Part shown: positions 866 through 43,630 of the stretch, one piece after another
Layout: each line of letters begins with the position of its first letter
How positions within the stretch are numbered: position 1 is the stretch's first letter
Assembly (NCBI RefSeq): GCF_006345805.1
Contig: NW_021832868.1
Coordinates: 28,793-92,792, forward strand
Reading direction: 5' to 3'
Length of the DNA stretch: 64,000 nucleotides
Source of the DNA: Octopus sinensis
Lineage: Eukaryota
The notes under the pieces: generated by a model
Database searches by the model: none
Told to the model about the DNA's origin: nothing
What the model saw: the letters and a program-made list of their open reading frames with translations, nothing else
Position numbers and translations under genes: made by a program

Positions 866-3800
866 GGAAAAAACATTATTAGTTAAGGGAGTTAAAAACT
901 AACTAAGTAGACCTTCGGCATCGCTGCCTTTTCAGTCTCCATCTCACACACGCCTCCCTACACACAACCACAGGTTAAGACTTACCGCCTTACCTGCCAT
1001 CCAGAAATAATCTTCTCTAGGACCTCAGAGAGGCCTTTGAGAGATGATTCCTGGGCGTCGGAGAGCTCAGTCCGGAATCCTAAGCCATAGGCTAGCCTTA
1101 TGGCTCGTCTTCTTACTTTTTTAAGCACGTCAACATGCTTATCCCTGTCCTCATAGAGGTACCAAGCGTGGACGCCATAGGTCAAGACGGGTAACACCAT
1201 GGCGTTAAACACGCGGAACCAGGCACCTCTGCTCAAGCGGAAAGCACGCAACGCACCTAATCGCTGCATTGCACGCATTTTCGTACGTGCAATGTGATCA
1301 TCAAACTTACCGGACGGCTTAAAGAGCACGCCCAAATAAGTCATCCGATCAACTGCAGCGATTGCTGACCCGCTCAGCAATAACCTAGGAACAAAATTAG
1401 TGTAACCCCTCGTCCTTTTACAGACTTTAAGGACACTGCACTTGTCCGCGCACATTCTCAGACCCCTACTCCCACACCAGTTTGCAAGTCCATCCACAGC
1501 AACCTGAAGCCTACGACACGCACACTCGGTTTCATTGAGTGATCCCAGAGGATAATGTCGTCTGCATAGATTACCATTTCAGTACGAGCATTGACTGGCA
1601 TAGGCGCAGTGGCCATAAACACATTGAATAGTGTCGGACTGAGCACAGAGCCCTGAGGGACCCCGCGAAGGACTGTTGCGACTTTAGAAAAGACCCCCTG
1701 ATGCCGCACGACCTGCCTGCGAGATTCAAGAAACCCCGACAGCCAGCGCCTTAGACACGGAGAAACCCCACACGTGGCAAGGGAACTCCGGAGGCCGTCG
1801 TGCCACACCGAGTCGAAGGCCTTTTCAATGTCGAGACTAACTAAAATACCGCATTCCCTTTTCTGGAGGGCGTTCTTCATACCAGACGACACCTTGTGAA
1901 GGCAGTCCCCGCATGAGCGGCCCTCCCTGAAGCCCCATTGGAACTCAGGGAGGGCGTCTGCAACCATCAGCTCCTCCAGGAGCCTTTGGTGCATAATTCT
2001 TTCTAGGATTTTAGATATTGCGGGGAGCAAGGAAATGGGCCTATATCCCCCGGGGACATCATGTGGCTTCCCGGGCTTTCCGATAAGGATTACCTCAGCC
2101 ACTTTCCACCTGGAGGGAATCATCCCAAGTCGCAAGCTCCCGTTAAATAAAACCTTTAGTGCAGTGATTAACCGCGGCGGGGCCTTCTTAAAGATGGCCA
2201 TCGGGATCCGATCCAAACCCGCCGCGGTGTTCTTACTTCGGGAGATTGCTGCCAGAATCTCCGCTTCAGTAATTTCGCCTGCATCGTTCCTTGATATGCC
2301 CAGCTGGCAGCGCTTGTCCCACGACAATATCTGCTGGACAGTATCAAAGGACGATGTCTCTACGAACTGACCTCCGTCAGTTCCCGAGATGCCATTGAGA
2401 TGGGCTGAAAGTATTTCAACCACCTCAACCGGGTCCGAAGCGAGGTTTCCATCAGAGCGTTTAAGGCGCACTGACTTAGCCCCCCTTCTCCCCGACAGGC
2501 TCTTCAACTGCTTCCAGAAGTCCGGAAAGCGAGGGTCCACCCTTCGGCAGGCCCTCTCCCACCGCGAACTTTCGAGTTCGCGGATTTCTCTTCGGATCTC
2601 CCTCTGAAGCCGGCTAATCCAGCCACGAAACCAAACACGGTTCTCCTCGTAAATGCATTTGTCCCGTAGTCTGGATAGCCGGCGCTTGAACCTAATTTTA
2701 TTTAAGATCCGGTGAGGGAGCGTGGAATGTGACTGACCCTGCACTGAGTTCTGTTTGAAATTATCTCGCATGTAATCAGTCAGGGCAGCATTGATTCCAT
2801 TATCAAGCGCCTCCAACTCACGTATGTTGGCGCAGGTATTCCCCACCAGAAGTGAGGGCAACCTGCTGGCCATGAAACTCTCCAGGTTAGCCCAGGAACC
2901 CACCCGGAGGTCAAAGTATCCTGGGACCCTTTGAGGAACTGGCTCACGGAGTTCGTGCAATAGAGGCAGATGGTCGCTCCCAATATCGGGCAATAAAATA
3001 GTTTTACTAACCCAATTTAGAAGACCGGGACTGACCAGAGCAAGCCCTAGCCAGTCACGTCCTCCCCTCGCGTCGACGTGGTTTGGCTCGCTCGAAGTCC
3101 GGATTTCCAGCCCGAGGTCTTCAACCAGCGTCTTCAGAGCCAAACCATGCGAGTTGGTTACCCTGAAACCAAGATCTTGATGCTTGGCATTCAGGTCCCC
3201 AACAACCATGGCCTTCGGATGCTTTTCAAAGAACTCCCGTACGTGCCAGGAGCACGCCGTAAAGTTCTTCGAGTACATCCCACCTAGGTAAAATGTTAAC
3301 TCGCCTATGCGAATTCTCACTTGGAGGAATTCACACAAGCTACATGAACATATACCTGGACTCTGCAAGGCAAGGTAGGGCTTGTAGAAGAGGCTAGTTC
3401 CTGTGCCACATATTGACCCCTGTTTCCAGGGTATGTGACGACAGTTGTAGCCATCAACTACGTACGGACCCCCCTTTACCTTCGTTTCGTTGACCACCAG
3501 AATGTCCGCACTCGTGGTGGCCAACATCCTCTGAACGGCGTCCCTTTTTCCTTCCAAGGAACGCGCGTTCACCGATATGATGTTGAGCATCATATCGGTT
3601 CTTCGCCAAGGATCTTCTTGGCCTCGGCAACGTTGCAGTGTAGCATTTCCTCTACACTGCAATTCATCTCCCTACAAAATTTTAATAGGGAAACGCATAA
3701 TTGCACCGCAGGACTAATACTGTCCTGCGGTACACGCTCGCCAGGGGCTGAGTGCAATGGCATCTCCACGTATGGAGGACGCCTTTTCAGCCCCAGGTTG

Positions 3801-5324
3801 TGCCGGACGGCGCCGCCGTTAGCCGCCTCAGAAGGCATTGCCGGCTTAGGCAACCAAGCGGACTCGGAAGCTTTCACCTGCTTTGCCAACTTTGTCGGCG
3901 AAGGCTGCACCGACCCACACGTAGCATGGCTCACAGGTTCCACTGTCTTCGCCACCCAAACGGATTTGGAAGGTTTGGCCAGTATCGCCTGCTTGCCAGG
4001 TTTTGGCGCAGGGTGCGCGACGCGACGCGGGCGACTTACTGTTGGGATTACATCCCCACCTACCTTTCGGGTTGCCTCCTTGAACTTGGGGCAACCTCTG
4101 AAGTTGGCAGTGTGTCCCAACTTACCACAGTTGACACACTGCCTCTCCTTGGATGGTGAGGGGCACGTCTTGCGACCATGCTCCCCACCGCAAATAAGGC
4201 ACTTCGCCTTATCCGGGCACTTTGTGGAGATGTGCCCGAACCCCTGACACCGAAAGCATTGGGTGGCTTTCGGGCGGGGCCAGGCAGCTCTCATCCTAAT
4301 GTAGCCGATCCTAGTACCCAGAAGTACTAGGCGCTCGGCTTCCGCAGGAGATCCCAGGATGACCTCCACCACTTCAAGAGGGCGGTTACCCTGCTTGAAG
4401 CGTGCAAGGGCAGAGGCACTGGGGTACTCCCGCTGTATGTGTCCTAAAAGGTCATTATCCTCGAAGTCCCGGGGGACCCCGAGGAGCAGGACTCTTACCT
4501 GCCTTACCTTTTGTTCAATCCTGACAAGCCGATGCATGCCAGGACCGAACGGGCTGGACTTCTCCAGCTCTCCTTTAAAGCTGAAGAAGTCCTCCTCCTT
4601 CTCCCACCCAAGCAGGAATTGGGTGGGCTCCCTCTTCAGGACTCTATACAGCTTTGAAGGCTGGATAGAGTCTAACGTACCTAAGATCTTTATGACCGAG
4701 GCCTTCCCACTTGTAGGGAGGACCTCAAGTCGTGCCACAGCACCGAAGGTAATTCTGCCCCCGGCGCCAGTGGTCTTCTTTGGGTGTGCATCCACCTGAT
4801 CGGACACACACCCAGTACCTAAAACATTAGGGGGGGTTGGACGGCCAGCCGCACGTTTGGGTTTCCCCACCGTGTACCAACCGTCCTCAAGGGCAACCTT
4901 ATTTCCTGCCGTACCCACCGGACGGCCTCAGGAGACGACACCCTGTTGGCATTAATTGACTTACCTAGGCTGGGTTTGGCACCACTAGACAAACCGCAAA
5001 CACGTGGCGAACCAGCATGCTGTGCGGTTGTCGTGGCTACCAAACAATTAGTACCTGTTGCAGCTGCTGCTCCCCCGACACCAGCCAAAGGGGCAGCAGA
5101 GGAGAAGAGTCTTCAGTGAGTGCTGAACCCATCTGGGAGGGTCCAGGCTTCGACCTCCTGCTTTGACCTAAAGAATTAAAAACACCACTAGAATAGCCGG
5201 AAGCACGTGGCGGTGAACCACGGCTCCGGCAGTTCATCGTAGTGGCACACTGAACCGTCTTGTCCTCCGGGGAGTGCGAAGCGGGAACGCCTCCACTTCT
5301 GCATAGTCTTCTTAGTGCAGACAG
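866..5324 (-). mobile_element. Non-LTR retrotransposon family A, copy A1 (full length; APE-RT with CCHC-knuckle ORF1, Jockey/I-like group)
   Basis: ORF1 with three CCHC-type knuckles, ORF2 with APE and RT, and a 3' UTR shared with the copy at 24434-24554. 3' end abuts H2A -10; 5' end is continuous with H3 codons 1-28. Confidence 0.95.
982..3593 (-). CDS. LINE A1 ORF2, APE endonuclease + reverse transcriptase (870 aa after repairing one 1-nt deletion near 1530)
   Basis: APE motifs NARSL, VVNETK, GDLNAKH, GSDHLP; RT motifs YRPISLL, FQWGFR, DIEKAFDSV, GVPQGSVLSP, YADD. 2612 nt versus 2613 for the intact B1 ORF2. Confidence 0.93.
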
Positions 5325-5408
5325 CTTGCGAGCAGATTTTGCAGACAACTGTTTCCTTGGTACTTTTGCACCAGTAGATTTTCGAGCCGTTTGTTTTGTT
5401 CTAGCCAT
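3590..5408 (-). CDS. LINE A1 ORF1 (gag-like nucleic-acid chaperone) initiating at a histone H3 ATG; ~606 aa in consensus
   Basis: CFRCQGFGHISTKC, CLICGGEHGRKTC, CVNCGKLGH knuckles. Two 1-nt C-run deletions (near 5100 and 4920) are intact in copy A2, giving one frame from MARTKQ to EEPI*. Confidence 0.85.
5325..5408 (-). other. H3: Histone H3 5' segment (codons 1-28) fused to LINE A
   Basis: MARTKQTARKSTGAKVPRKQLSAKSARK; H3 homology stops after K27. Confidence 0.95.
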
Positions 5409-5431
5409 ATTTTTTTTTTATTTCAGACAGG

Positions 5432-6051
5432 ACCTATGCCAAACATGCAATATGCTCTCGAAATATTTTGGGAGCGAGTTATTTTAAGTGATGAAAGTAA
5501 ATTTAATATGTAAAATAGTGATGTAAGAACTTTAGTATCGAGAAATCGCAAGGAAAAATATTTAACAAACAATCTTACAAAAACAGTAAAATTCGGTAAA
5601 GGAACTATCATGAACTATCATGCCATAATCAATATTGGATTTATTAATTTGGTTTTGATAAAAGAGAAGATTGGTGGAGCTTTGCATGTTAACATATTAA
5701 CGAATAATATGATCATTTCTGAACAAAATCAAACATAAAGATCCTAGTTTCCAACAAGACAATGATCTGAAACATACTTCGGCAATAGCAAAGAGCTTTT
5801 TTTCAAGTAAATAATATCGAATTACTACTATGGCCAACACAAAGCCCAGATTTAAACCCTATAGATAATGTTTGGGCCTTTATTAAAGAAAAAATCAAAA
5901 GAAGAGATTTTTGAAAAAAGAACATTTATTTGCAAAAATATCATCCATTTGGAATTAACTCAAAATAGAATACGCAAAAAGTCTTATTAATAGCATGCCA
6001 GGCCGAACACTAGATGTAATTAGAGCTAATGGAGGATATAATGGGTATTAA
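5432..6051 (+). pseudogene. Tc1/IS630-type transposase remnant
   Basis: WERVILSDESKFN, TVKFGKG, FQQDNDLKH, WPTQSPDLNPIDNVW, SMPGRTLDVIRANGGYNGY*, with stops and frameshifts; 5' part is replaced by the A1 junction. Confidence 0.88.
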
Positions 6052-6495
6052 ATAAATTTGTTCATTTTTTTGGGTTCTGAATTATCAATGAATGGAAAAC
6101 CGTATAAATATAATATTTTTTAGACAAACTAAAAAATAAAGCAAAACTTTATTTAATGTTTTAAATCGATAGAAGTTATTTTTTAAATATTGTTTCATAG
6201 TAAATTCATGAGAAAATGCCTTTTCAATTTTTATTTTTGTTCACTGTATATATTACTATTTTTTGGGATAATTTAGCTTAAGTAAATAAATTATATTGGA
6301 CTAAAAAATATTTTGCCAATGATAGAATAACACAGTATTGCGATATTTTATTTATAATTACTTCTAAACGTTTATTCGTTAATTGTGTTTGAAATTATTT
6401 TGAAATTCTTTAAAAAAACTTAACTGGTTGATCTATTGTATTTCGAAAACAATATTACAAAATAACAGCGCATTATTCAAATAATTAATTTAAAG

Positions 6496-6854
6496 TTAAG
6501 AAGTTGGTTTAGGAGTTTCTGCAGTTTTGCGAATCATAAATCCACCAGATGAAATAATAGCTTTCTGAGTTAATTCTTTTAATTCGTCGTCATTTCCAAT
6601 TGCAACGACAATGTGACGTGGTTTAATTCTTCTTTTTCCACATTTTACTGCTGTATTTCCAGCAAGTTCAAGCATTTCAGCCACAGCATATTCCAATACT
6701 GCGCACATATATACTGCGGCAGGAATTCCTACTCGCATTCGGGTTTCATGACGGAGACACGGTGAATGCGTCCAACTGGAAACTGTAACCCGGCCCGAAC
6801 GGATTTGCTTTTAGCCTTTGACCGTACTTTTCCTCCTTTTCCTCTTGAAGACAT
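6496..6854 (-). CDS. H2A: Histone H2A, second copy (1-nt deletion near 6750; pseudogene or assembly error)
   Basis: Identical to 496-855 except GACACCGG > GACACGG. Confidence 0.9.
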
Positions 6855-7022
6855 TATACTCTGCTAACTATTTTTTGTTTACATAATAAAAAAATGGCAT
6901 TCCGAAATTTCGTTGAAGATTTTTTTCGGAATGGTCCTTTTTTGCATCAGTCGAAAAAAATTTGGCAATGATACTTTTTTTGCATAGGTTGAAAATAGTG
7001 TTTATTTAGAGAATTTTTCCTA
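6855..7022. promoter_or_regulatory. Bidirectional H2A-H4 promoter (168 bp)
   Basis: Lies between divergent ATGs. Carries ATTCCG/CGGAAT and (G)CAATGATACTTTTTTTGCAT motifs that recur upstream of other histone genes. Confidence 0.75.
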
Positions 7023-7463
7023 ATGTCTGGACGTGGTAAAGGTGGCAAAGGAGGAAAGAGTGGTGCAAAACGATTTCGAAAGATATTAATTGACAATATA
7101 CAAGGAATTACTAAGCCAGCAATAAGAAGACTATGTCGAAGAGGAGGTGTTCGAAGAATTTCTGGAAAAATTCATGCAATTACAAGACTGTCTCGAGGAG
7201 GACCTCTTCCCAACGAAAAGGTTCCTGATGCGGACGGTTGGCATACCGTGGGGAAACCCAAACGTGTTGCCAGCCGTTTTTAATAGTTTAGGTACTGGGT
7301 GTGTGTCTGCGCAGGTAGATGCACACCCAAAGAAGACTGCTCGCGCCGGGGGTAGAATTACCTTCGGCGTGGTGGCTAGAGAGGTCTAGTGGCCTCGGGC
7401 AAAAAGGCCTCGGTCATAAAGATCCTGGGGACGCTTGACTCTATACAGCCATCTAGGCGGTAT
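7023..7463 (+). mobile_element. Histone H4 codons 1-50 (7023-7172) fused in frame to the 5' end of LINE family B ORF1 (7173-7463)
   Basis: H4 ...[10 protein letters not shown] continues as [21 protein letters not shown], homologous to A ORF1 DGWYTVGKPKR. 7426-7463 matches the B1 sequence at 14428-14464. Confidence 0.9.
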
Positions 7464-8455
7464 GACTCGAATGAAGTTCGTTTTATTGACTCGACAGAAA
7501 AATTCGGAAATTATAGCATTTCTTAAGGATGGTGAAATGCCAGATGAAGTGACTCAGAATCAGAATGAGTCAAATTTCAGGAGAACGGCATCATTATTCA
7601 GATTGTCGGACTCCAAAAATGACATTTTTTACTTCAAAACTTCGGGAATCTTACTACGTACCTTTGCTCTCGAGGAAGTAGAAGAAAAGAAACTTTTTAT
7701 TGAAAATCTCCATTTAAAAAATGGACATCCAGGTCAAGACAAGCTGCTTTTTCTCCTTAAAGATACTGTTTATGGGTCTTGTCGGAATGAGGTTATGTCA
7801 GTCCTCAAATCATGCTGCCAATGTCAGGCGAGAAAGCTTATGAACACCAGACCTGTAATTAAGCCAATAAGAGCCTATAGCGTGAGAGAAAGGTATCACT
7901 ATTCAGTCTAATGTTAGATATATTTTTGATCTAATCGATTTACGTCATTATGCTCATGAGAACGAAAATTACGCGTGGCTTTTGGTTGGCCTCGATTCAT
8001 TCTCAAAGTTTTGTTGGACGTCACCGTCATTGTCCAAATCAGCTATGGAAGTGTCTAAAGCAATAAATAAAATAATATTAATTTTTGGAAAACCATTAAT
8101 TCTTCATATGGACAATGGGAAGGAATTTGTCAACGAAAGGATTTCCCGATTGTGCGATGAGTACAAGATAAAGCACGTGAGAGGTCGTGCAAGGTGCCCT
8201 TGGGTGCAGGGGCAGATGGAAAGACTAAACCAATCTCTGAAATATATGTTGTCCTCCACCTGTTTGTCTGAAAACCTCTATTATAAATGGATTTCGATTA
8301 TAGACCGGATAACCAGTTCATATAACTCACCCATTTGGCAACTCGATGCAATAGAATGCATAATTCCGAGTAAACAAGGCGACATAACGAAATTGTTAAA
8401 TGCATACACATGCACCTATGCAGAAAATTTGGATTCAAAAAATCAAAAAGGTTAA
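7462..8455 (+). mobile_element. Gypsy-like integrase (Ginger/TDD-type transposase) with a 25-nt intron at 7893-7917; C-terminus truncated
   Basis: HHCC zinc finger (HLKNGH..CCQC) and core FDLIDL / LHMDNGKEF / QGQMERLNQSLK. GTATCA..TGTTAG splicing joins the two ORF-track frames (VRER/YIFDLIDL). Confidence 0.85.
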
Positions 8456-8661
8456 AGACTCACTCTATCCAAAGAGTTGACACTACTATCCTTAGTTAAT
8501 TTACTAAATAATTAAGATTAATTTATTCAAGTTTAATGCAACTTGGGTCACTCGTCTTCTGAAAAAGTTAAATTTGTTGACTTAAATAGCAATATCAAAA
8601 AAATGACAAATTGGGAAATTAATTATTTTAAAAATAAAATGAATAACAACGTCATTAAGAA

Positions 8662-9473
8662 ATGCCAAATCGCATAAAAAAAGCTCATTCGAAGCGTAAA
8701 GAAAAAAAGTAAATTTACAAAAAATAACACTTATAGATGAATTAAAACACAACACTGATCACCAACCCGTAATAGCGACCACTCCAATGCAGTTAAGCAT
8801 TATTGAACTCCAAAAACAAGCCCGTAAACAGATGACCGTACAGGAGAAACTTCTGGAAGTAGTGGACAGTTTTGACGTTCTGTCCCAATCAGAGGCCAAC
8901 TACTTAGTCCTAGACCAGAAATTACTTGACAGAGCTAAAATAATCGAAAATCCACCAACATATGCCCCTTCAGAACACAGCCTTAGTCTTGAATCTATCG
9001 AAGCTCCAATTCAAAGAAAGCCTTACAAACCTTATGTTAAACCACATTCAACAAGCGCGTTTATACTTTCCTCAATTATATTTAGTATAATTTGTATGTT
9101 TATATTTTAGCTGTAATCGCACTTTTGGTTCACCATAACGCATTCAGACCACAAATGAACGACATTAAGCCTATTGAACAGCTTTGTGAAAAAATGTCTC
9201 CACATATATTGATCACAAATAACCAAGTGAATGTCACATATATGAAGGCTCTGAATGTCGGATAATTGGAATATGAGACTTCAGATGTCAACGAACTTAG
9301 TTATTTTATTAAATATAAAAAATGTCGGAATATTTGGACCTGGATATTTTCTTGTTAATAGAAATGATAAAGAGGGAACAAACTACATAATGCATAGATT
9401 TATTGGAAAATATGAATATCCGATGGAATTTGTGGAAATAGTTTGCAACAAATATTTGTTGCCTTTTAAGTAA
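8662..9473 (+). CDS. Putative multi-exon gene for a small membrane protein, function unknown
   Basis: ORFs 8787-9110 and 9255-9473 can be joined through candidate 26- and 28-nt GT-AG introns; one hydrophobic segment (AFILSSIIF). The 5' exon frame is unresolved. Confidence 0.3.
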
Positions 9474-9569
9474 ATTACTTTTTGATGTAAAAATAAATTT
9501 ATCTGAAAAATTATCTTTTATAAATACAGATAAGCTGTTTTTAATCCAAATATTTTTTTTGACTTTAAA

Positions 9570-9800: not shown

Positions 9801-10390
9801 AGTTGGATGTAGATAAGTCTCTACAGGCTTATATACAGTCAGCCCTTTCCTGACGTTTAGTCAGCAAGAGGCGCTAGACTGCACCTTCTCGAAGGTCTAC
9901 AGTGCCAGAGAAGAAAAGGAAGAAAAAGAGGAGGTGCGTGGAGTGCCACCTTCTGCTCACTTCGAAGGCTCTGGACTTAGTAAAATTACTTAGTTTCTTT
10001 TTTTAATAAAGCTAGTTAGTATATTTATGAAATTGCTAATTTTTATCTGGTTAATTTGTAAGGAATATCAATGTATTTTATTAAAAAAATTATGTATAAT
10101 TTATCCACCAAATCCGTAAATTGTCCTACCTTGACGTTTCAAGGCATTAACAACGTCCATTGCGATAACAGTTTTTCTTTTGGCATGCTCAGTGTAAGAA
10201 ATACAATCACGAACAGTTTGCTCAATAAAAATCTTAAGGACAGAACGTGTCTCCTCGTAAATTTTTCCAGAAATTCTTCGAACACCCCCTCTTCGACATA
10301 GTCTTCTTATTGCTGGCTTAGTAATTCCTTGTATATTGTCAATTAATATCTTTCGAAATCGTTTTGCACCACTCTTTCCTCCTTTGCCCC
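9720..10390. repeat. Inverted segmental duplicate of ~19040-19790 (H4 + 3' flank + RTE remnant)
   Basis: Near-identical reverse complement. Confidence 0.9.
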
Positions 10391-10406
10391 TTACCACGTC
10401 CAGACT
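10101..10406 (-). CDS. H4: Histone H4 (start codon damaged, CCTAATGTCT > CCTAGTCT, plus small indels)
   Basis: [48 protein letters not shown]. Confidence 0.9.
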
Positions 10407-10551
10407 AGGAAAAATTCTCTAAATTGGAAAATTTTTATTTAATAATTAATTAGAGAGGCTGTTAGTGAGGTAACATAAGGAGACCTTCGGCATTCCTGCG
10501 TTTTCGGTCCAGCACACACGCTCGCCTCTCTACACAACCACAGGTTAGGAC

Positions 10552-14464: not shown

Positions 14465-14469
14465 GTTTA

Positions 14470-14820
14470 AAAACAGTTTAGAAAAAAAATATAACAAAAA
14501 TAATTAAAATTTGGTAGAAATTGATCATTTTAGATTTTAGGGCGCTAAAATACAAGATCGCCGAATCCGGGAACAAATAAATAAAAGTTTGCCATAAGAA
14601 TATAAAGAATAGAACTTTCTATCAAAAAATAAGGTAAAATTCAATGAATAAAGATAAATGAGAATATTTCAAATAAGCGATATAAACAAATTGAAAGAAT
14701 AAACTCGCAAATATTACACAAATGAAATTTCAGATAATTTATTAATTAAAAGAAACTACATCGCAAAATATTCCTTCTAATCCAAATAAATAAAAAAATA
14801 AAGATTGACCAAATAATGGC
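14470..14820 (-). repeat. Dispersed AT-rich repeat of unknown origin (also ~28897-29330 and ~38694-39225)
   Basis: Shared blocks such as ATTATTTGGTCAATCTTTATTTTTT and GGATTAGAAGGAATATTTTGCGATGTAG. Confidence 0.8.
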
Positions 14821-14907
14821 AAATTGTGAAACAGAATTGCGAGCAGATTGTTTCCTTGGAAATTTTGCTCCAGTAGATTTTTGAGCAGTTTGTTGTGTTC
14901 TAGCCAT
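14820..14907 (-). pseudogene. H3: H3-like 5' stub (MARTQQTAQKSTGAKFPRKQSAR)
   Basis: Degenerate H3 N-tail with the same upstream region as the stub at 28844. Confidence 0.8.
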
Positions 14908-14988
14908 ATTTTTGTTATTTCAGACAGAACCGATTCAGACAAGTTATTTTTGATTTATATTATTCCGAATTTTTAAACAACGTTATTA

Positions 14989-18928: not shown

Positions 18929-19018
18929 GGTCCTTTTTTGCATCAGTCGAAAAAAATTTGGCAATGATACTTTTTTTGCATAGGTTGAAAATAGTGTTTA
19001 TTTAGAGAATTTTTCCTA

Positions 19019-19326
19019 ATGTCTGGACGTGGTAAAGGTGGCAAAGGAGGAAAGAGTGGTGCAAAACGATTTCGAAAGATATTAATTGACAATATACAGG
19101 AATTACTAAGCCAGCAATAAGAAGACTATGTCGAAGAGGGGGTGTTCGAAAAATTTCTGGAAAAATTTACGAGGAGACACGTTCTGTCCTTAAGATTTTT
19201 ATTGAGCAAACTGTTCGTGATTGTATTTCTTACACTGAGCATGCCAAAAGAAAAACTGTTATCGCAATGGACGTTGTTAATGCCTTGAAACGTCAAGGTA
19301 GGACAATTTACGGATTTGGTGGATAA
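19019..19326 (+). CDS. H4: Histone H4 (102 aa after repairing a 1-nt deletion near 19098), with half of its promoter at 18929-19018
   Basis: Complete [24 protein letters not shown] sequence; AATAAA just downstream. Confidence 0.92.
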
Positions 19327-20014
19327 ATTATACATAATTTTTTTAATAAAATACATTGATATTCCTTACAAATTAACCAGATAAAAATTAGCAATTTCAT
19401 AAATATACTAACTAGCTTTATTAAAAAAAGAAACTAAGTAATTTTACTAAGTCCAGAGCCTTCGAAGTGAGCAGAAGGTGGCACTCCACGCACCTCCTCT
19501 TTTTCTTCCTTTTCTTCTCTGGCACTGTAGACCTTCGAGAAGGTGCAGTCTAGCGCCTCTTGCTGACTAAACGTCAGGAAAGGGCTGACTGTATATAAGC
19601 CTGTAGAGACTTATCTACATCCAACTGTCTTAAGTACCGCTTGTGGTATTTGGTGACCAGTTCATCCCATGTCATCACACACAGTTCTTGAAAGGGATCT
19701 CAAACTTCATGGCAAAAGTTTCAAAAACTGGGACGACCTAAAATCTTTGCGGGATTTCGCCCGCAACAGAGGGGCATGGACGAGCAAGGAACAGAAGATT
19801 GTTTTGCTTGTGACACGTGTCGGATTATAACTTTGTTAATGTTCCTACGGAATGTATTATAATAATAATTTCCTCATGACATTAACTAATTTATAACTTT
19901 CCGTTTACTTATTGTTTTATTTATTAAGAAATATTTTAATTATCTACTATTACAAATTATCCTCTCAAAAAATTCGGAATGCTACTTTTAAAAAAATTTT
20001 GGAAATAAAAAAAA

Positions 20015-27924: not shown

Positions 27925-27945
27925 GAATATACAAATTTTGTTAAT

Positions 27946-28310
27946 ATTGGCACCTAAAGTTAGCACAAAAGGACAAAAAAGAGCTCCCATTAAAACAAAA
28001 AAATGTTTCCGTCGCTACAAAGAAAAAAAAGAAAAGGAAAACTTTTTCGATATATCTTATGAAAATTTTAAAGACAGTACATAATCAACTTGGGATGTCA
28101 AAGAGGCTATGATGGCTATGGACAGTTTACATTCGATGTTTATGACAAAATAAAAACCGAGGCTTCAAATTTAGTCTATCAGAATTCGAAGGCTACCATT
28201 ACCTCACGTGAAATACAGACTGCAGTTCGTCTGATTCTTCGGGTGAATTGGCAAAACATGCTATTACAGAAGGGTGCAAGGCAGTTACTAAGTACACAAA
28301 TACAAAATAA
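27946..28310 (+). CDS. H2B: Histone H2B, divergent, with several indels (pseudogene or error-prone copy)
   Basis: (M)[60 protein letters not shown]. Confidence 0.88.
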
Positions 28311-28800: not shown

Positions 28801-28843
28801 AAAATAACTTGTCTGAATCGGTTCTGTCTGAAATAACAAAAAT

Positions 28844-34605: not shown

Positions 34606-34612
34606 GTATATT

Positions 34613-34701
34613 GTAATTCCTTGTATATTGTCAATTAATATCTTTCGAAATCGTTTTGCACCACTCTTTCCTCCTTTGCCACCTTTACCACGTCCAGACA
34701 T
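34613..34701 (-). pseudogene. H4: Histone H4 5' fragment (codons 1-30) between LINE B3 and the RLE element
   Basis: [30 protein letters not shown]; identical to the other H4 5' ends. Confidence 0.92.
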
Positions 34702-34721
34702 TAGGAAAAATTCTCTAAATT

Positions 34722-37700
34722 GGAAATTTTTTATTTAATAATTAATTAGAGAGGCTGTTAGTGAGGTAACATAAGGAGACCTTCGGCATTCCTGCCTTTT
34801 CGGTCCAGCACACACGCTCGCCTCTCTACACAACCACAGGTTAGGACTTACCGTCTTACCTGCCACCCAGTCATTATCTTCTCTAGGACCTCAGGGAGGC
34901 CTTTGAGGGACAATTCCTGGGCGTTGGAGAGCTCATCACGCCATCCTAAGCCATAGGCTAGCCGGATGGCTCGTCTTCTTACTTTCTTAAGCGCGTCAAC
35001 GTACTTCTCCCTGTCCTCGCAGAAGTGCCAAGCGTGCACGCCATAGGTTAACACGGGTAACACCATGGCGTTGAACACACGGAACCAGGCACCTCTCCTC
35101 AAGTGGAAAGCACGCAACGCGCCTAATCGCTGCATTGCACGCATTTTAGTGCGACCCCCTGGTGTCGCACGACCTGACCGCGAGATTCGAGGAACCCCGA
35201 CAGCCAGCGCCTTAGACACGGAGAAACCCCACACGTGGCGAGGGAACTCCGCAGGCCGTCGTGCCACACCGAGTCGAAGGCCTTTTCTATGTCAAGACTA
35301 ACTAACATACCAAACTCACTTTTCTGGAGGGCGTTTTTCATTTCGGAAGACACCTTCCACAAGCAGTCTCCACATGAACGACCCTCCCTGAAGCCCCATT
35401 GGAACTCCGGGAGGGCGTCAACCACCGTCAGCTCCTCCAGGAGCCTTCGGTGCATGATCCTTTCTAGGATTTTAGATATAGCGGGAAGCAAGGAAATGGG
35501 CCTATATCCCCCGGGGACATCATGAGGCTTCCCAGGTTTTCCAATGAGGATTACCTCAGCCACTTTCCACCTGGAAGGAATCATCCCAAGTCGCAAGCTC
35601 CCGCTAAACAAAACCTGTAAGGCCGTGATCAACAACGGCGGGGCCTTTTTGAAGATGGACATAGGGATCCGATCTAGCCCCGCCGCGGTGTTCTTACTTC
35701 GGGAGATCGCTGCCAGGATCTCCCTTTCGGAAACTTCGCCTGCATCGCCCCTTGTTATGTCCAGCTGGCAGCGCTTGTCCCAAGACAATACCTCCTGGAT
35801 AGTAACAAAAGACGACGTCTCTACGAACTGACTTCCGTCAGTTCCCGAGATGTTGTTGAGGTGGGTTGAAAATATATCAGCCACCTCAACCGGGTCCGAG
35901 GCGAGGGTTCCATCAGAGCGCTTAAGGCGCACTGACTTTGCCTCCCCTCTCCCCGACAGGCTCTTCAGTTGTTTCCAGAAGTCCGGAAAGCGCGGGTCCA
36001 CTCTTTGACAGGCCCGCTCCCACCGTGAACTTTCGTGTTCACGGATTTCCCTCCGGATCTCCCTCTGAAGCCGGCTGATCCAGCCGCGAAACCAGACACG
36101 GTTCTCCTGGTACACGCATTTGTCCCGCAGTCTGGACAGCCGGCGCTTGAATCTAATTTTATTTAGCACCCGGTACGGGAGCGTGGAATGTGCCTGGCCC
36201 TGTACTGGGTTCTGTTTGAAATTATCTCGCATATAATCAGACAGGGCAGCATTGATTCCATTATCTAACGCCTCCAACTCTCGTATGTTGGCGCAGGTAT
36301 TCCCCACCAGAAGTGAGGGCAACCTGCTGGCCATGAAACTCTCCAGGTTAGCCCAGGAACCCACCCGGAGGTCAAAGTATCCTGGGACCCTTTGAGGAAC
36401 TGGCTCACGAAGTTCGTGCAATAGAGGCAGATGGTCGCTCCCAATATCGGGCAATAAAATAGTTTTACTAACCCAATTTAGAAGACCGGGACTGACCAGA
36501 GCAAGCCCTAGCCAGTCACGTCCTCCCCTCGTGTCGACGTGGTTTGGCTCGCTCGAAGTCCGGATTTCCAGCCCGAGGTCTTCAACCAGCGTCTTCAGAG
36601 CCAAACCATGCGAGTTGGTTACCCTGAAACCAAGATCTTGATGCTTGGCATTCAGGTCCCCAACAACCATGGCCTTCGGATGCTTTTCAAAGAACTCCCG
36701 TACGTGCCAGGAGCACGCCGTAAAGTTCTTCGAGTACATCCCACCTAGGTAAAATGTTAACTCGCCTATGCGAATTCTCACTTGGAGGAATTCACACAAG
36801 CTACATGAACATATACCTGGACTCTGCAAGGCAAGGTAGGGCTTGTAGAAGAGGCTAGTTCCTGTGCCACATATTGACCCCTGTTTCCAGGGTATGTGAC
36901 GACAGTTGTAGCCATCAACTACGTACGGACCCCCCTTTACCTTCGTTTCGTTGACCACCAGAATGTCCGCACTCGTGGTGGCCAACATCCTCTGAACGGC
37001 GTCCCTTTTTCCTTCCAAGGAACGCGCGTTCACCGATATGATGTTGAGCATCATATCGGTTCTTCGCCAAGGATCTTCTTGGCCTCGGCAACGTTGCAGT
37101 GTAGCATTTCCTCTACACTGCAATTCATCTCCCTACAAAATTTTAATAGGGAAACGCATAATTGCACCGCAGGACTAATACTGTCCTGCGGTACACGCTC
37201 GCCAGGGGCTGAGTGCAATGGCATCTCCACGTATGGAGGACGCCTTTTCAGCCCCAGGTTGTGCCGGACGGCGCCGCCGTTAGCCGCCTCAGAAGGCATT
37301 GCCGGCTTAGGCAACCAAGCGGACTCGGAAGCTTTCACCTGCTTTGCCAACTTTGTCGGCGAAGGCTGCACCGACCCACACGTAGCATGGCTCACAGGTT
37401 CCACTGTCTTCGCCACCCAAACGGATTTGGAAGGTTTGGCCAGTATCGCCTGCTTGCCAGGTTTTGGCGCAGGGCGCGCGACGCGACGCGGGCGACTTAC
37501 TGTTGGGATTACATCCCCACCTACCTTTCGGGTTGCCTCCTTGAACTTGGGGCAACCTCTGAAGTTGGCAGTGTGTCCCAACTTACCACAGTTGACACAC
37601 TGCCTCTCCTTGGATGGTGAGGGGCACGTCTTGCGACCATGCTCCCCACCGCAAATAAGGCACTTCGCCTTATCCGGGCACTTTGTGGAGATGTGCCCGA

Positions 37701-38541
37701 ACCCCTGACACCGAAAGCATTGGGTGGCTTTCGGGCGGGGCCAGGCAGCTCTCATCCTAATGTAGCCGATCCTGGTACCAAGAAGTACCAGACGCTCGGC
37801 TTCTGCAGGAGATCCCAGTGTAATCTCCACCACTTCAAGAGGGCGATTACCCTGCTTGAAGCGTGCAATGGCAGAGGCACTGGGGTACTCCTGCTGCAGA
37901 TGACCTAGGAGGTCATTATCCTCGAAGTCCCGAGGAACCCCGAGGAGGAGGACACTTACCTTACTTACCTTACGTTCGATCCTGACAAGGCGATGCATGC
38001 CAGGACCGAACGGATTTGACTTCTCCAGCTCCCCTTTGAAGTTGGAGAAGTCATCCTCCTTCTCCCACCCAAGCAGGAATTGGGTGGGCTCCCTCTTCAG
38101 GACTCTATACAGCTTTGAAGGCTGGATAGAGTCTAACGTACCTAAGATCTTTATGACCGAGGCCTTCCCACTTGTAGGGAGGACCTCAAGTCGTGCCACA
38201 GCACCGAAGGTAATTCTGCCCCCGGCGCCAGTGGTCTTCTTTGGGTGTGCATCCACCTGATCGGACACACACCCAGTACCTAAAACATTAGGGGGGGTTG
38301 GACGGCCAGCCGCACGTTTGGGTTTCCCCACCGTGTACCAACCGTCCTCAAGGGCAACCTTATTTCCTGCCGTACCCACCGGGACGGCCTCAGGAGACGA
38401 CACCCTGTTGGCATTAATTGACTTACCTAGGCTGGGTTTGGTACCACTAGACAAACCGCAAACACGTGGCGAACCAGCATGCTGTGCGGTTGTGGTGGAT
38501 ACCAAACGATCAGAACCAGTTGCACCTGCAGCTCCTATCAT
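34722..38541 (-). mobile_element. Chimeric LINE: family B 3' half and family A 5' half, with a ~0.4-kb RT deletion at 35153
   Basis: Diagnostic SNPs switch from B to A between 36282 and 36311; third-variant patch at ~37770-38050. 3' junction is the same as B1. Confidence 0.9.
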
Positions 38542-39269
38542 AAATTGATTTGTATAGATTTTTTGTTAAAAAAATTTGGCACGTGGAAATTTCAGAAATA
38601 CAATCTCCTTGCAAATTAATTGTCGATTCTCTATGAAACAGAAATAAATATTATTATCGCAGTCTTTATTTCAGATATCTGGACCATCATTGAGATATCC
38701 GCTCTGGTATTTACACTGCTTATAAGCTACTAGGTGAAATTGTGTTTTAATTAAAATTATCTTAATTTTTAGTTACCCAATTATTAATAGAAAACATAAT
38801 AAATTGTGGCACGTGTGAGCACACTTTTGACATACCTTGTTGTCCTGTTACATTATTTGGTCAATCTTTATTTTTTTATTTAATTGGATTAGAAGGAATA
38901 TTTTGCGATGTAGTTTCTTTTAATGAATAAATTATCTGAAATTTCATCATTTTGTAATATTTGCGAGTTTATTCTTTCAATCTGTTTATATCGCTTATTT
39001 GAAATCTTCTCATTTATCTTTGTTCATTGAATTTCATCTTATTTTTTGATAGAAAGTTCTTTTATTTATATTCTTATGGCAAACTTTTATTTATTTGTTC
39101 CTGGATTTGGCGATCCTATATTTTAGCGTCCTAAAATCTAAAATGATCAATTTCTACCAAATTTTAATCATTATTGTTATATTTTTTAAACTTTTTTTTT
39201 TTTTTCTAAACTATTTTAGTATTTACAGTCAAATTAATTAAAAGAGAATTAATGTCGTGAACTTGAGGG

Positions 39270-39701
39270 TTAGTCCGACGACGATGCACTGCGGATAGAG
39301 AGGCAGTTCCCGCGAAGAATTGCAACCGAGATGCGCTGGAAAAGCCAGCTCGTCTCCCTCCGGTCATTTGTATTCTGTGAGATTCTTCCTCCCACAACCC
39401 GTAACAGATTTTCTACCTTCTTTCCAACCACACCGGAGGTCTCAAAGGCTAGGGGGACAAACTCAACGACGTTCGGAAGCACAGCGTACTTCGTCAACTT
39501 CCTTTCTTCTGCCAGCGCACATGCGTAGCCTGGTGTACTGGCTGTTCCTGTGAGCACAGTATCTGAAAAGGAGTCGACGCAAGTTACATCCCAAACAAGA
39601 GACCTTCCTCCTCTAAAGGGGAATATAGTCATCCCGTCAGGACGCTTTCCGTCACTGCGGCCGATCTCAAATGGGAAAAGGGTCATCCCGTCAACTTCCA
39701 A
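39270..39701 (-). mobile_element. CRE-like RLE non-LTR 3' fragment
   Basis: DGKRPDGMT..GRSLVWDVTCVD..AEERKLTKY..PLAFETSG..FQRISVAILRGN. Confidence 0.85.
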
Positions 39702-39719
39702 AATTTGCTTTTTGGATTT

Positions 39720-39800
39720 GTATTACTCAACAAAATTTCGGAATGATACTTTTCGATTACTCAACAAATCAACAAAATTTCGGAATGATACTTTTTGGAT
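39720..39800 (+). promoter_or_regulatory. Duplicated histone-promoter motif forming the left flank of LINE C2
   Basis: AAAATTTCGGAATGATACTTTT twice (CGGAAT at 39739 and 39781). Confidence 0.65.
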
Positions 39801-42800
39801 TACTGGCCGGCGGGTTTTTCACAGCCCGTAAGGCTGCTTACGCGGCTTTGGCGAATGGGCATCCACCCTAACATGCCCAGTGTCCAGGACTGTTGCAGTT
39901 TATGCAGGTCTTGACAGCAGGGTCGTTAGGTCTGGGGTCTGAGTTCGGACAGCTCTTGTGTCGGTGTTCGCCTCCACAGAGCAAGCAACGAACTTTTTCG
40001 GTGCACTTATGGGACGTGTGCCCAAATTGGTGACACCGGAAGCATCTGACAGCCGGGGGCTTGTGCCATTTACATCGGATATGGCTGAAACCCGCAGTAA
40101 TCCCGAAGCGGATGAGGGTGTTGGCCTCAGCTCGGGAGTCCAGCGTAAGCTTTCCGACTGGAATGTCGGTTCCATTCCGAGAGTATCTCTCGAACTTGAA
40201 GTCCGAATCGAGAGTTTCCCGGAGGTGGAGGTCAAGGTCGTTAGTCGACATCCAACGGGGGATTCCCTTTAGGATCAGGACGGAAGCTTTCTCAGGTATT
40301 GAAGCAAGTTTGTGGCCGCCTTCGCCAAACAATTTAGTATGAGTTAACTCCGCCTTGAATGCGGCTGCATCCTCGGCGCACCGGAATTGTAGTAGGAAAG
40401 ACCCGGACTTCTGTAGAGTAATCCGAGCTTTCGACGCATTTGGGGATTTTGACAGGAGATTAAACCTCTTGATTTTCCCCAGTGCTGGGTTGTCAATCGT
40501 GAGGGTAAACAACAGGCTCGAGTTATCGCACTCCATCGCCAACTGAGGAGGCTCCTCGTCACTGAGTTTTCCTCCAGTAGATTCGCGAGCTCTTTGTTTG
40601 ATTGCGGTGTCAGTTTGTTTCTCTTTAATAACTTTGGATTAGTTTTTTTTTAATAACTTTGTTTCAATTTGTTTCTCTTTGATAACTTTAGGTGCCATCT
40701 GTTTTTCTTTAATAACTTTGTTTCAAAATTCAGGCTCTTTTTTGTCCTGGTTTCTCTGACCAGGACCTGCACAACAGAGATGCCCTTATGGAATTCTTTC
40801 GTCGTTGTGTGGGAGCTCTAACCAAACTTGGTGTGGAACCTGAGATGCTGCAACGGCTCCTATTAGAGGGGAGCACGCCAGCAACATAGCCCCAGTCAAA
40901 ATCATCGCTGTGAATGCCCGATCTGTCAAGAGACGGCACCAGGACTTTGTTGAGATGGTAAACAGCGGCCATCCAGACATTATTGTCGTCAACGAGTCTA
41001 AGCTCAAAGAAAACCACTCGTACGAACTTCCGGGCTACCGGTCAGTGGATCTAAAATGGGGAAGCTGCTCTACGCCAGGGACTGGCTCGAGCATCTTCTA
41101 CGCTGAAAAACTCCAAGTCCGTAACCTCACCATCATCGAGAGCACGGTGTGTGAATTCCTCTCTCTTGAGGTGAAAACTGATTCCTTCTGGATAAAGGTC
41201 GGTGGAATATATTGCAAATATCTCCCCCCCTGCATCAGATTGATTGACGAATTCTTTTCAAGCACAGCTCATTGCTTTCTTATCGGAGACTTAAACTCGA
41301 AGCACACGGCGTTTGGATGTCGGTTAACCAACCAAGATAATCGAACACTGAAGAAGTACACTGACAAGCTTGGTGTTTTCGTCAGAACATCCGAAGACCC
41401 GAACCACCACTCGCCCTTTGGCGGGGACAACCTGTGCCTGTGCATCTGTTCTCACTCTGTCGGTAACCTTATGGAAAAGCCTACAATGCTTGACGATATC
41501 GGAAGTGACCACCTACCAATGGAGATCAAAATTCACACTAGCATTGTTAGACAAGAACGCATTTTCTCTCACTACAATCTCTCAAAGATCAACTGGCCAC
41601 ACTACAGGAGCTCCACAAGTGCATTCCTGCACGACAACGGTCGCTCTGTTGGGTATAACTCAGCCCTCGACATCGACTCCGTAAGCGATAAGTTAAGCAA
41701 ATTCATGCTTCAGTATCTAACGTCGTACGGAGAATTGCCAAGTGCAGACCGCGCACGGAGGACCACTCCGAGCGTGAAAGTGAAGATCATCCTCAACGAA
41801 AGGAAGCGGCTGAGAAATAAACTCAAACGCTGTGTGGACCCAGCTGACAGGGGAAGACTTAGGAACATAATCTCGGAAATTGGTTATAAGGTCCACGTCG
41901 CGACAAAGCTGGAAGCAGCCAGGAAATGGCAGAAGGTTTGTCAAAACCTGGACTACAGAAACCCAAATTTCTGGGACTGTTTCCACAAAGTGGCTACCTC
42001 GAAGGAAAATCCTCACCCCCGAGGTTGTGCAACCAGTCTGGTATGCCCGCCTCGCCACAAGAGATGCCAAACATATTCGCAGAACACCTGGCCACTATCC
42101 AGGAGGCCAATCCGGAAACGTCGCAAAACCGGGAGTCGGAGCCACTGCCGCGCCGACTGTCGTCGGACCATCACCCGATCACCATTGCAGAGGTGACCTG
42201 GGCCATCCGTTCGTCAAAAGGCAACGCATTGGGCCATGACAAAATAGCGATGCGATTGTTTAAGGAAGCACCCGAAGACCTACATGTGTTCTTCGCGGAT
42301 TTGTTTACGGCAAGTCTCAAGTGGGGCCATGTGCCGGGAAAATGGAAAATCTCAGAGGTCCGGATGATCAAAAAGCCTACGAAACCGGTGAATCTCGCTA
42401 GCAGCTACCGTCCCATAAGCCTAATCCCAACTATCTCAATGCTGATGGAGAAAATTATGGCCAAGCGCCTCGACTTCCACGCCGAAGAGAAGAAAGTACT
42501 TCTCCCGCAGCAATGGGGTTTTCGCTCTGGACGTAGCTGCGGTGACTGTTTCATTATGGTACAGTCCACCATCTCGAGAGCAATGGAGTTTAAAGAAACT
42601 TTATCTCTTGTATGTCTGGACATCTCAAAAGCTTTTGACAGCGTCTGGCACAGAGACCTACTGGAAAGGATCGAACTCTGTGAGCCAACAGCGGAAGTCT
42701 TTTTCTGGATGCGCTGCTTCCTCTCAAATCGTTACTCTTTTATCTCTGAGTCGGGCTTCTTCTCAAGATATATTTCGCTCCGAAGGGGGGTTCCGCAGGG

Positions 42801-43630
42801 GTCCTGTCTCAGCCCAATCTTTTTCAATTTGGTAATGAGCAGTTTCCCCACACCCTCCGATCCCAGGACATCCCTACTCCTCTACGCGGACGATGTTCTC
42901 GTTCTGGACACCTCGATGGACACCAATGCCTCGGAGAAACGACTTGCCGGCTACATTGAGGAGATAAAGAATTGGTGCATTGGTAAGCGACTCTCGCTGG
43001 CCATGGACAAATCTGCATATCTCAAAATCAACCCAAGAAAGTCGCAAGATCGCAAACCCGGCTCTTTGATGGAAATCGCTCGCCCTGAGAGCATACGTTA
43101 CCTGGGGCTTACAATCGACGCAAACTCGAGATACCATTTGCATTTCAAACGGAGAAAAGGGAAAGCCATCGCCGCTTTCCGACTCCTAAGAAGCATGCAC
43201 TTGAATCCAAATACCTTCCTATTTGTATACCATGCAACAATCTTGCCCAGCCTACTGTATGGTATGGAAGCTTGGTTCTACTCGAAACAATATTAGAAAA
43301 TTCTGCGAAAATGCGAAAAAATACGGAGATACGCTCTAAAACTAGCCTATATGCTAAATCCATGGGACCCTGTCCCAAGCTGGGCGGAGAGCAAGTCTCC
43401 AGAGCTACGGCAGGCCATCGAGGATTCTATCCGAACTTTTCGGAAACGTTCTAAAGTGGCTGACCTATTCATCGATCGTGGAGAATAGCAGGTGTCCCTG
43501 CTCATAGACAGACAAAGCGGACGAACCATGGAAGAGCTCGAATGCCCAAAGCAATCGTCTCGTCAAAATTATTTTCCGCACTAAGCTTCTGTCTCGCTCT
43601 TCTTTCTTACAATAAAATTCTTCATTCATT
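39797..43630 (+). mobile_element. LINE family C, copy C2, with inverted 5' segment (39797-40748, minus) and direct 3' segment (~40749-43630); ORF2 has a premature stop at 43294
   Basis: ORF1 N-terminal two-thirds on minus; ORF1 end and ORF2 on plus; ends AATAAAATTCTTC(ATTC)2. Confidence 0.92.

Follow-up and report, generated by a model that had tools for sequence, protein, structure and literature searches.

APE-type LINEs of Octopus sinensis occupy precise sites in histone gene leaders and carry histone N-termini in frame with ORF1

In Octopus sinensis, a multicopy cluster of divergent H2A, H2B, H3 and H4 genes has been invaded by long interspersed nuclear elements (LINEs) with an apurinic/apyrimidinic endonuclease (APE) and a reverse transcriptase (RT). 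Their 3' ends join the short leaders of the histone genes at recurring nucleotides and in the sense orientation, and several copies open with a histone leader, ATG and N-terminal codons, which we refer to as a head. We describe these elements in a window comprising bases 28793-92792, the final 64 kb of contig VCDQ01007429.1, and in related loci of the same species. The explanation that we consider probable as a whole is that these are target-specific APE-type LINEs which integrate by target-primed reverse transcription (TPRT) into short histone leaders, use the histone promoter, and produce the protein of their first open reading frame (ORF1) as a fusion to a histone N-terminus.

Results

LINE 3' ends recur at fixed positions in histone leaders

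Self-comparison of the window delimited copies of three kinds of LINE, A, B and C (Table 1). Five of their seven 3' ends, read directly, lie 10-80 nt upstream of a histone ATG, all in sense, which bore out the claim of an earlier reading of this stretch (hereafter the initial annotation). For the window only, this corresponds to a binomial P of ~9e-9 against a background of 1.35%, the share of strand positions in our 267-kb sample that meet the definition of a histone-linked end, namely a histone-type ATG no more than 120 nt downstream on the sense strand. The other two ends are pile-ups at H2B promoters or leaders. At one, A2 is followed by the 5'-truncated C1 and then by an H2B leader, and these are two successive insertions at a single leader; at the other, the 5' flank of C2 (39700-39795) contains two H2B-type promoter motifs, and the sequence AACTTGCAAAAGG stands directly 3' of the element.

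The same bias held when flanks were tabulated over the wider sample, for which 15 loci were fetched via the H2A and H3 proteins and merged with the window to give 267 kb of non-redundant sequence on 10 contigs. Probes for five tail types revealed 33 distinct non-redundant 3' ends, 25 of them histone-linked in sense (binomial P~2e-40, and still ~3e-22 if 15 of the 25 events are counted as independent); orientation by blastx gave 24 sense and 0 antisense. Among the remaining ends, one on VCDQ01006206.1 abuts an H2B leader whose gene is deleted, a B end on VCDQ01013488.1 lies in H3-type promoter sequence, one is the pile-up of A2 on C1, and four have flanks whose opening bases, AACTTGCA, are those of the H2B leader. 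We had considered these AACTTGCA flanks as non-histone targets and rejected this, as they match the start of the H2B leader (AAAACTTGCAAATTTTGTGGATA-ATG), the 13-bp target-site duplication (TSD) of the window included.

Junctions repeat within 0-3 nt, even between A and C. At least ~20 distinct junction sequences fall at H4 -19, H3 -16 or -30, H2A -10 or -8, H2B -23 and a site in the promoter motif, a secondary insertion site located inside TTCGGAAT. A LINE-free unit of ~4.3 kb on VCDQ01010301.1 retains the native order H2B> H3> <H2A H4>, and when the other contigs are aligned to it, homology breaks at reference positions 109-128, 993, 3738/9 and 3868/70, which are the four leaders. Insertion at the same nucleotide, in one orientation and in independent copies is one mark of a target-specific LINE, and the proposal that multicopy histone genes serve as the target has held up: insertion is nucleotide-precise, orientation-specific and recurrent across diverged subfamilies. 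H2A leaders bear insertions in three distinct forms, yet H2A heads are absent from all elements; recombination through head homology therefore cannot have produced the junctions as a by-product.

Histone heads travel with the elements and open intact ORF1 fusions

Heads start 10-30 nt upstream of a histone ATG. In A1 and A2 the start lies 13-29 nt before the ATG of H3, and the head contains H3 codons 1-28, identical at the DNA level to one local H3 type; after the head (5325-5437 in A1) come first LSALRRLCRSGGV, which is a diverged version of H4 residues ~34-46, and next GC-rich element sequence. The same H3(1-28)/LSALRRL junction stands behind six different flanks: an H2B promoter, an inverted H3 promoter, an A tail, the spacer that follows H4, and the sequences downstream of H2A and of H2B. 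It follows that the head is mobile together with the element. These six flanks also led us to refuse mere target-site duplication as the general explanation of heads, and to keep it as one possible origin.

Two intact fusions were found on VCDQ01007076.1 (locus L001). In an A/B-related copy (L001:1672-3213), H4 residues 1-53 and ORF1 form a single intact reading frame of 513 aa; over ~160 nt the DNA of this head matches the local H4 at 100% identity, and ORF2 of the copy has one frameshift. A C'-type copy (L001:7121-8494) has an intact 457-aa ORF composed of H2B, H3 and H4 pieces followed by ORF1, in the order MAPKKNSKENAKANTEGQKR (H2B), TKVPRKQLS (H3), TIRNLCRSGSV...LSAIRNLCRSGGA (H4-like, twice) and ORF1. 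In addition, an H3-headed copy reads for 200 aa from the H3 ATG into ORF1 and is one 1-nt indel short of an ORF of ~640 aa.

The initial annotation had placed the untruncated 5' ends of all three kinds of LINE in histone coding sequence. This stands for A, which begins in H3, and for C2, whose H2B-like head combines H2B-like MAPKV with H3-like KQRARESTGGK, while B1 and B2 are 5'-truncated and have no head; ORF1 of B1 is open to its 5' end, hence the assignment of that copy. The H4 head attributed to B in the window was not upheld, as the H4-headed piece at 7004-7463 contains only a ~270-nt ORF1 fragment, 75% identical to A, which is cut off by an integrase fragment of a long terminal repeat (LTR) retrotransposon. 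This LTR fragment, at 7420-9107 (+), contains ORFs with Integrase_H2C2 and rve domains. We had at one stage taken the region as a 2.4-kb LINE, 'E', and discarded that candidate, since all but ~270 nt belongs to the integrase-bearing fragment. An H4-derived remnant is common to A, C' and the 7004 fragment, which on comparison of the sequences suggests that the association with histones is older than the split of the lineages; independent capture is the alternative.

5' junctions vary and include candidate by-products of TPRT

The 5' junctions vary across copies, as TPRT would predict. At A2 the join is exact, the native H2B promoter upstream ending within one base of the usual junction, and at the 7004 fragment the native H4 promoter lies directly upstream; other copies have deleted or rearranged 5' flanks. 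Upstream deletions at 5' joins measure ~0.25-1 kb, as in an H4-headed copy joined with microhomology to a mariner-like remnant, and in a 776-nt A fragment with H4 codon ~80 as its 5' flank and an H2B-type leader as its 3' flank. A1 is flanked by a 1.43-kb direct duplication, whose downstream copy consists of positions 1-865 and sequence before the window start (fetched locus L005 9991-11426), the copies being 99.4-99.7% identical; this looks like an unusually long TSD. The one clean TSD is the 13-bp AACTTGCAAAAGG, present at 43632-43644 and 44420-44432 around a further C-like element, most copies lying in pile-ups where TSDs are unreadable. In C2, the 5' part is inverted, and comparison with C1 shows a 232-nt gap where the orientation changes, a signature of twin priming. 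On VCDQ01010311.1 (locus L004), at ~2300-2345 (-), a solo A-type tail of ~17 nt, ATGTTTTTCCCCTCCGG, was observed between a native H2B promoter and the H2B leader, and is either an extremely 5'-truncated insertion or a footprint.

The target is an unusual histone quartet

H4 and H2A of the cluster are ~77% and ~58% identical, respectively, to typed canonical (vertebrate-type) queries. NCBI names the H2A of the window 'histone H2A-beta, sperm-like [Octopus sinensis]', and several contigs of GCA_006345805.1 encode exact copies of this protein. Intact copies of H3, H4 and H2A are present on other contigs, and pseudogenes are numerous among the histone copies. Over their first 84 nt, two H3 gene types are separated by five substitutions, all of them synonymous as read from the sequence, so the genes are under selection now or were so recently. 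A histone 3' stem-loop was not found with Rfam, even at E ≤ 5, and AATAAA signals were read by eye downstream of the genes, which together indicate that the quartet is not a set of ordinary replication-dependent histone genes. The four promoters share a TTCGGAATG-type motif and a TATA-like sequence upstream of the junction. The borrowing of the histone promoter that had been proposed for these LINEs fits this architecture (A2 behind the H2B promoter, the 7004 fragment behind that of H4), but the S-phase expression proposed with it is unlikely, given the missing stem-loop.

Several further observations concern the quartet. Its shared promoter motif, (T)TTCGGAATGAT, is partly palindromic and is followed by a T-run and the TATA-like sequence (for example at 6900-7003, 19930-20001 and 28700-28830 of the window), and is a candidate both for the site of a histone-cluster-specific factor and for a secondary insertion hot spot. 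The quartet has only two close relatives among those that emerged: a compact, LINE-free quartet on two Logan contigs (ERR12370323 and ERR12408770; H2A 76%, H4 92%) and a 2.2-kb contig, DF945167.1, of the assembly of the ant Vollenhovia emeryi (H2A 73%, H4 93%); this patchy spread could reflect contamination or a rare old set of paralogues. At fetched locus L013 (1413-2069 and 17247-20411), NCBI gene models splice the C-terminus of a LINE ORF2 onto a downstream H4 and link an H4-like piece with an innexin gene; such models may be artefacts of prediction, or may hint that transcription reads through from element to histone. On VCDQ01009797.1 (locus L014), a unit with a period of ~13.1 kb is present in two copies, each containing an H3-headed A followed by H2B, a C' element, H3, H2A and H4.

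Two deep lineages of APE-type LINEs

The second ORFs (ORF2) of A, B and C contain Pfam Exo_endo_phos/Exo_endo_phos_2 and RVT_1 domains, which identifies them as APE-type LINEs, and Pfam finds CCHC knuckles in the upstream ORFs (ORF1). Their tails (T(n)C(n)[GG(A)], TTTTCC(TCC)n or (TTCN)n) and their 5' truncation at many positions are likewise those of LINEs, and near-identical pairs (A1 with A2, B1 with B2, 99.1% each) stand between different flanks. The three APE-RT families originally distinguished are indeed such elements; however, A and B are 87.5% identical at the nucleotide level in ORF2 and are thus subfamilies, while C is a deep sister lineage of A/B, given 39% amino acid identity in the RT and 29% in the APE. 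The sample as a whole contains A, B and an H4-headed relative on one side, and C, C' and C'' on the other. We had also considered A3 and the adjoining B piece as a single recombinant element; the better interpretation is that 432 nt of B inserted onto A3, with an accompanying deletion.

Searches of solved structures returned L1 ORF2p and the R2 RT as the best matches of ORF2; they did not place the LINE clade, and none of the solved LINE endonucleases matched the APE significantly. The nearest proteins in the database, all unnamed, are no more than 29% identical, word-index searches with ORF2 and ORF1 found no close relatives, and an exact look-up of the B ORF2 gave no match. Scans for transfer RNAs and with Rfam were empty. 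A profile-free search with ORF1 against 1.8 billion representatives did recover relatives, two of them in O. sinensis away from histone genes (L018 10001-10831 and L019 790-5145) and with non-histone ORF1 N-termini: a C-like ORF1, 73% identical to C in amino acids, near a kinase gene, and a second family at 47%. These are possibly non-specific sister lineages.

Table 1 Features and LINE junctions of the histone cluster. Positions refer to the window, or to the histone ATG for junctions; a slash marks the junction.
Feature	Position	Strand	Details
H2A gene	499..865	-	119 aa, intact (gene 499-855), with 10-nt leader; target of A1
LINE A1	868-5437	-	Full length; T(n)CC tail at 868; ORF2 APE-RT 1461-3671; ORF1 (CCHC) 3593-4927; frames of head and ORF1 broken
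1.43-kb direct duplication flanking A1, upstream copy	5435..6864	-	From H2A -10 to end of mariner-like remnant
H2A copy 2	6499-6854	-	Frameshifted; inside the 1.43-kb duplication copy
Native divergent H2A/H4 promoter region	6865..7003		With TTCGGAATG-type motif
H4 leader and codons 1-50 fused in frame to LINE ORF1 N-terminal fragment	7004..7463	+	Behind native H4 promoter; remnant AITRLSRGG; frame read from sequence
H4 pseudogene	10104..10424	-	ATG lost (gene 10104-10400); 19-nt leader; target of B1
LINE B1	10426-14463	-	ORF2 intact, 870 aa, 10555-13164; ORF1 13164-14477
Truncated H3 variant	14819..14987	-	Promoter-proximal 80 nt and codons 1-33, joined to repeat D; target of B2
LINE B2	14995-18928	-	99.1% identical to B1; 5'-truncated, no head; 3' tail TTTTCC(TCC)2
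H4 promoter, leader and gene	18929..19326	+	Frameshifted copy (gene 19019-19326)
Native H2B promoter	19930..20001	+	Stops at usual (presumed) nick position; abuts A2 head
LINE A2	20002-24555	+	Full length; H3 head ATG 20015; 99.1% identical to A1; several frameshifts; T(n)C(5) tail
LINE C1	24556-27924	+	5'-truncated inside ORF1; RT ORF 26186-27778; (TTCG)n tail; between A2 and H2B leader
Degenerate H2B gene with 22-nt leader	27925..28307	+	ATG to ATT, frameshifts (gene 27947-28307); target of C1, earlier of A2
H4 leader and codons 1-34	34613..34720	-	Cut by unrelated 5'-truncated RT element F
B fragment	34722-35153	-	432-nt 3' piece at H4 -19, piled onto A3; final ~825 nt of A3 gone
LINE A3	35153-38565	-	94.7% identical to A1; 5'-truncated before head; ORF1 504 aa (37054-38565) intact; ORF2 cut
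LINE C2, inverted 5' segment	39796-40752	-	H2B-like head, ATG 40701; ORF1 with three CCHC knuckles
LINE C2, 3' segment	40753-43631	+	APE 40844-42193; RT 41890-43293; (TTCA)n tail
Further C-like element	43632..44432	+	Antisense ORF1 piece and C''-type tail ending ~44419; 13-bp direct repeats
A1 3' junction	H2A -10		...TTTTTTCC/GCAGAGTATA-ATG
B1 3' junction	H4 -19		...TTTTCC(A)/ATTTAGAGAATTTTTCCTA-(ATG)
B fragment 3' junction	H4 -19		As B1: ...TTTTCC(A)/ATTTAGAGAATTTTTCCTA-(ATG)
B2 3' junction	~80 nt upstream of truncated H3 ATG		...TTTTCCTCCTCC/TAATAACG..., within promoter motif TTCGGAA/TAA
C1 3' junction	H2B -22		...(TTCG)n/GAATATACAAATTTTGTTAAT-ATT
H4 junction	-19		/ATTTAGAG
H3 junctions	-16; -30		/TCTGAAAT (-16); /TGAAACTG (-30)
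H2A junctions	-10; -8		/GCAGAG (-10); /AGAG (-8)
H2B junction	-23		/AAAACTTGC

Other features of the window

An unrelated RT element, F (~30100-34612, -), has a 740-aa ORF that opens in the RT domain and shares 27% identity with A/B across the RT core. The element is truncated at its 5' end, its join to H4 codon 34 does not keep the frame, and an ORF at 30127-30669 is its possible 3' part. An AT-rich repeat, D, occurs at 14469-14818 (-), 28893-29320 (+) and 38684-39198 (+), and also at L001, L003 and L004. Its junction with an H3 5' fragment falls at codon 7, 16 or 33 depending on the unit, and at 38684-39722 it leads into a 150-aa ORF in antisense, which has no match in Pfam. Further to the right, where the window is free of LINEs, lie a pogo/Tc5-type DDE transposase ORF (44989-46104, -), a BED/C2H2 zinc-finger ORF (47657-48298, +) and a weak carnitine acyltransferase-like fragment (54809-55300, +).

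Discussion

We propose that these LINEs integrate by TPRT, always in sense, 8-30 nt upstream of the ATG and at or near the presumed transcription start. The element would nick the antisense strand in a histone leader, prime reverse transcription from its variable tail, and have its 5' end joined imprecisely, three steps that are supported by the anatomy of the junctions. The adjacent upstream histone promoter may then yield an RNA that opens with the histone leader, and a 5' join that falls in frame within the first 20-55 histone codons would constitute a new head, produced either when a deletion extends into the sense-oriented gene before it or when a long stretch of the target is duplicated. 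Since the 3' junction is fixed and the 5' junction sloppy, some insertions would leave the promoter, leader, ATG and 20-55 codons fused in frame to the element; a copy transcribed from that promoter would include the head in its RNA and bring it to new sites, where a histone promoter would again lie directly upstream. ORF1 would be translated from the histone start codon, and heads would be replaced serially, with layered remnants left behind. The deletion route matches the gene order, in which H4 comes ahead of H2B and H2B ahead of H3, while H2A lies on the opposite strand, and would explain why heads derive from H4, H2B and H3 and none from H2A.

Passive accumulation of transposons in a decaying, repeat-rich cluster, with co-amplification of LINEs and histone units and no targeting at all, is highly improbable. 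Unrelated elements do reside in the cluster (RT element F, the LTR-retrotransposon integrase fragment, mariner remnants and pogo), many of the histone copies are pseudogenes, and LINE-bearing units have been amplified as higher-order repeats; but subfamilies with different tails occupy the same nucleotide, always in sense and never in antisense, the right end of the window, 20 kb of non-histone DNA, is free of A, B and C copies, and the P values given above speak against uniform placement even when 15 of the 25 events are counted. Chimaeras generated at the RNA level are an improbable competitor: an RT would jump between a capped histone mRNA (or head-bearing RNA) and the 3' end of another element RNA, with subsequent recombination into the cluster by way of histone homology. 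The junctions do coincide with the inferred 5' end of histone RNA and with the 5' ends of heads, many A-type junctions have an extra C(n)GG(A) between tail and leader, and tail-then-head arrays occur at L002 ~18452, L003 ~8855 and L001 ~7085. Against such chimaeras, the histone copies that follow the tails extend far into the native unit (>1.4 kb after H2A, and in blocks of 3.3 kb), H2A leaders are struck although no H2A head exists, the native H2B promoter stands directly before A2, and the 13-bp TSD, solo-tail footprint and twin-priming inversion are those of ordinary TPRT. The kilobases of native homology are also the reason for which we rejected the histone copies behind tails as processed retrocopies.

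A variant of our proposal that differs in how the site is chosen is tethering, in which the ribonucleoprotein binds a factor at the TTCGGAAT-type motif or the initiation complex and integrates no more than some tens of bases away from it, in the manner of Dictyostelium TRE5-A or yeast Ty3. We hold this to be possible though rather unlikely. Two deep lineages use four unrelated leader sequences, the sites lie 16-33 nt downstream of the motif, and secondary sites fall within the motif itself (cggaa/taa and cgg/aat), all of which speaks for it. However, the spacing from the motif is 16 nt in one H2B promoter variant and 28 nt in another with the same junction in both, and a precision of +-0-3 nt is tighter than that of typical tethered integration.

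Several points weigh against TPRT by target-specific, histone-headed LINEs as we propose it. All cluster loci were reached through histone proteins, so that our counts describe histone-anchored DNA, and the co-amplification of LINE units in higher-order repeats means that independent events number fewer than 33 and that copy counts are inflated. One B copy has a non-histone 3' flank, and the related O. sinensis families recovered with ORF1 are different, head-less and without histone neighbours. The four leaders have no obvious common motif, so the specificity of the endonuclease is not evident from them, and the position of the junctions at or near the transcription start is suggested only by TATA-like spacing and the 5' ends of heads. 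Finally, the histone-tail fusion of ORF1 proposed in the initial annotation can be read in the intact ORFs of L001, but every head-ORF1 frame inside the window is broken.

Whether the captured N-terminus, or the 5' histone RNA, might itself be part of the homing mechanism is a separate matter, and one on which we are doubtful. In one version, an ORF1 protein with H4 or H3 tail and helix-1 segments would travel alongside new histones and so reach their gene locus or its chromatin; in another, the head RNA would pair with the histone gene and mark its leader for nicking. If true, target choice and head identity would co-evolve through serial head replacement, with a targeting module taken from the element's own target genes. 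The fusions in any case raise the question of what role a histone tail plays on a LINE RNA-binding protein.

Target-specific LINEs are natural models for the insertion of genes at safe harbours. To our knowledge, the LINE targets described to date are all RNA genes, repeats or other transposons, and homing to leaders of genes transcribed by RNA polymerase II (Pol II), at several unrelated sequences, would widen this repertoire. The octopus elements allow a test of how an element that has no promoter of its own obtains expression at each new site, their layered H2B, H3 and H4 pieces form a readable fossil record of captures of host sequence, and they draw attention to an unusual, fast-evolving histone quartet.

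The initial annotation recognised no equivalent system, and none emerged here: the full-text literature searched (papers, with the repeat libraries Repbase and Dfam outside its scope) contained no histone-targeting LINE and no capture of start codons by LINEs, and the word 'histone' is absent from the Kojima target-specificity papers found. Known LINE targets are ribosomal, small nuclear and transfer RNA genes, spliced-leader exons, transposons, microsatellites and telomeric repeats (PMC4640811). R2 is transcribed only within the transcript of its host gene (PMC8789037). R1 and R2, which occupy 28S ribosomal DNA in arthropods and other animals, resemble the octopus LINEs in their precise, oriented insertion in a multicopy gene, their 5' truncation and their variable 5' junctions. 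In contrast, the octopus target is a Pol II protein-coding family, struck in the 5' leader and not in the interior of the product; several target sequences are used; host coding sequence provides the start and N-terminus of ORF1; and the endonuclease is of the APE type, whereas that of R2 is restriction-like. SLACS, CZAR, CRE and NeSL-1 are specific for spliced-leader genes; they enter such a small multicopy gene just a few bases inside its transcribed part, hence directly behind its promoter, and begin with its first nucleotides. They have restriction-like endonucleases and a non-coding exon as target, however, and are not known to show fusion to a host protein or serial replacement of heads.

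Tx1-group and other APE-type elements (Keno in U2 small nuclear RNA genes, Mutsu in 5S ribosomal RNA genes, TRAS and SART in telomeric repeats) share with the octopus LINEs the APE enzyme and strict multicopy targets, but no protein-coding head has been described for them. Mutsu families are matched to maternal or somatic types of 5S gene (PMC5340908), which parallels the specificity of the octopus LINEs for a variant gene cluster. Dictyostelium TRE5-A and TRE3 and yeast Ty3 keep a fixed distance, on integration, from genes that form a class through their transcription machinery and not through one target sequence (PMC5006619, PMC5911963); these are Pol III genes, while the octopus elements enter a Pol II histone promoter or leader, where tethering is hypothetical. 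As for the heads, 5' transduction by L1 likewise brings upstream host sequence into the retrotransposed unit via a host promoter, as we propose here, and the 'heads' of short interspersed elements are 5' modules derived from host genes (PMC4494074). The octopus module differs from both in being a protein-coding 5' end that provides an in-frame start for ORF1, is repeatedly renewed and matches the element's own target genes. Taken together, the comparison identifies as new the use of Pol II protein-coding gene leaders as a target class, several targets per element, and the iterative in-frame capture of a start codon and N-terminus.

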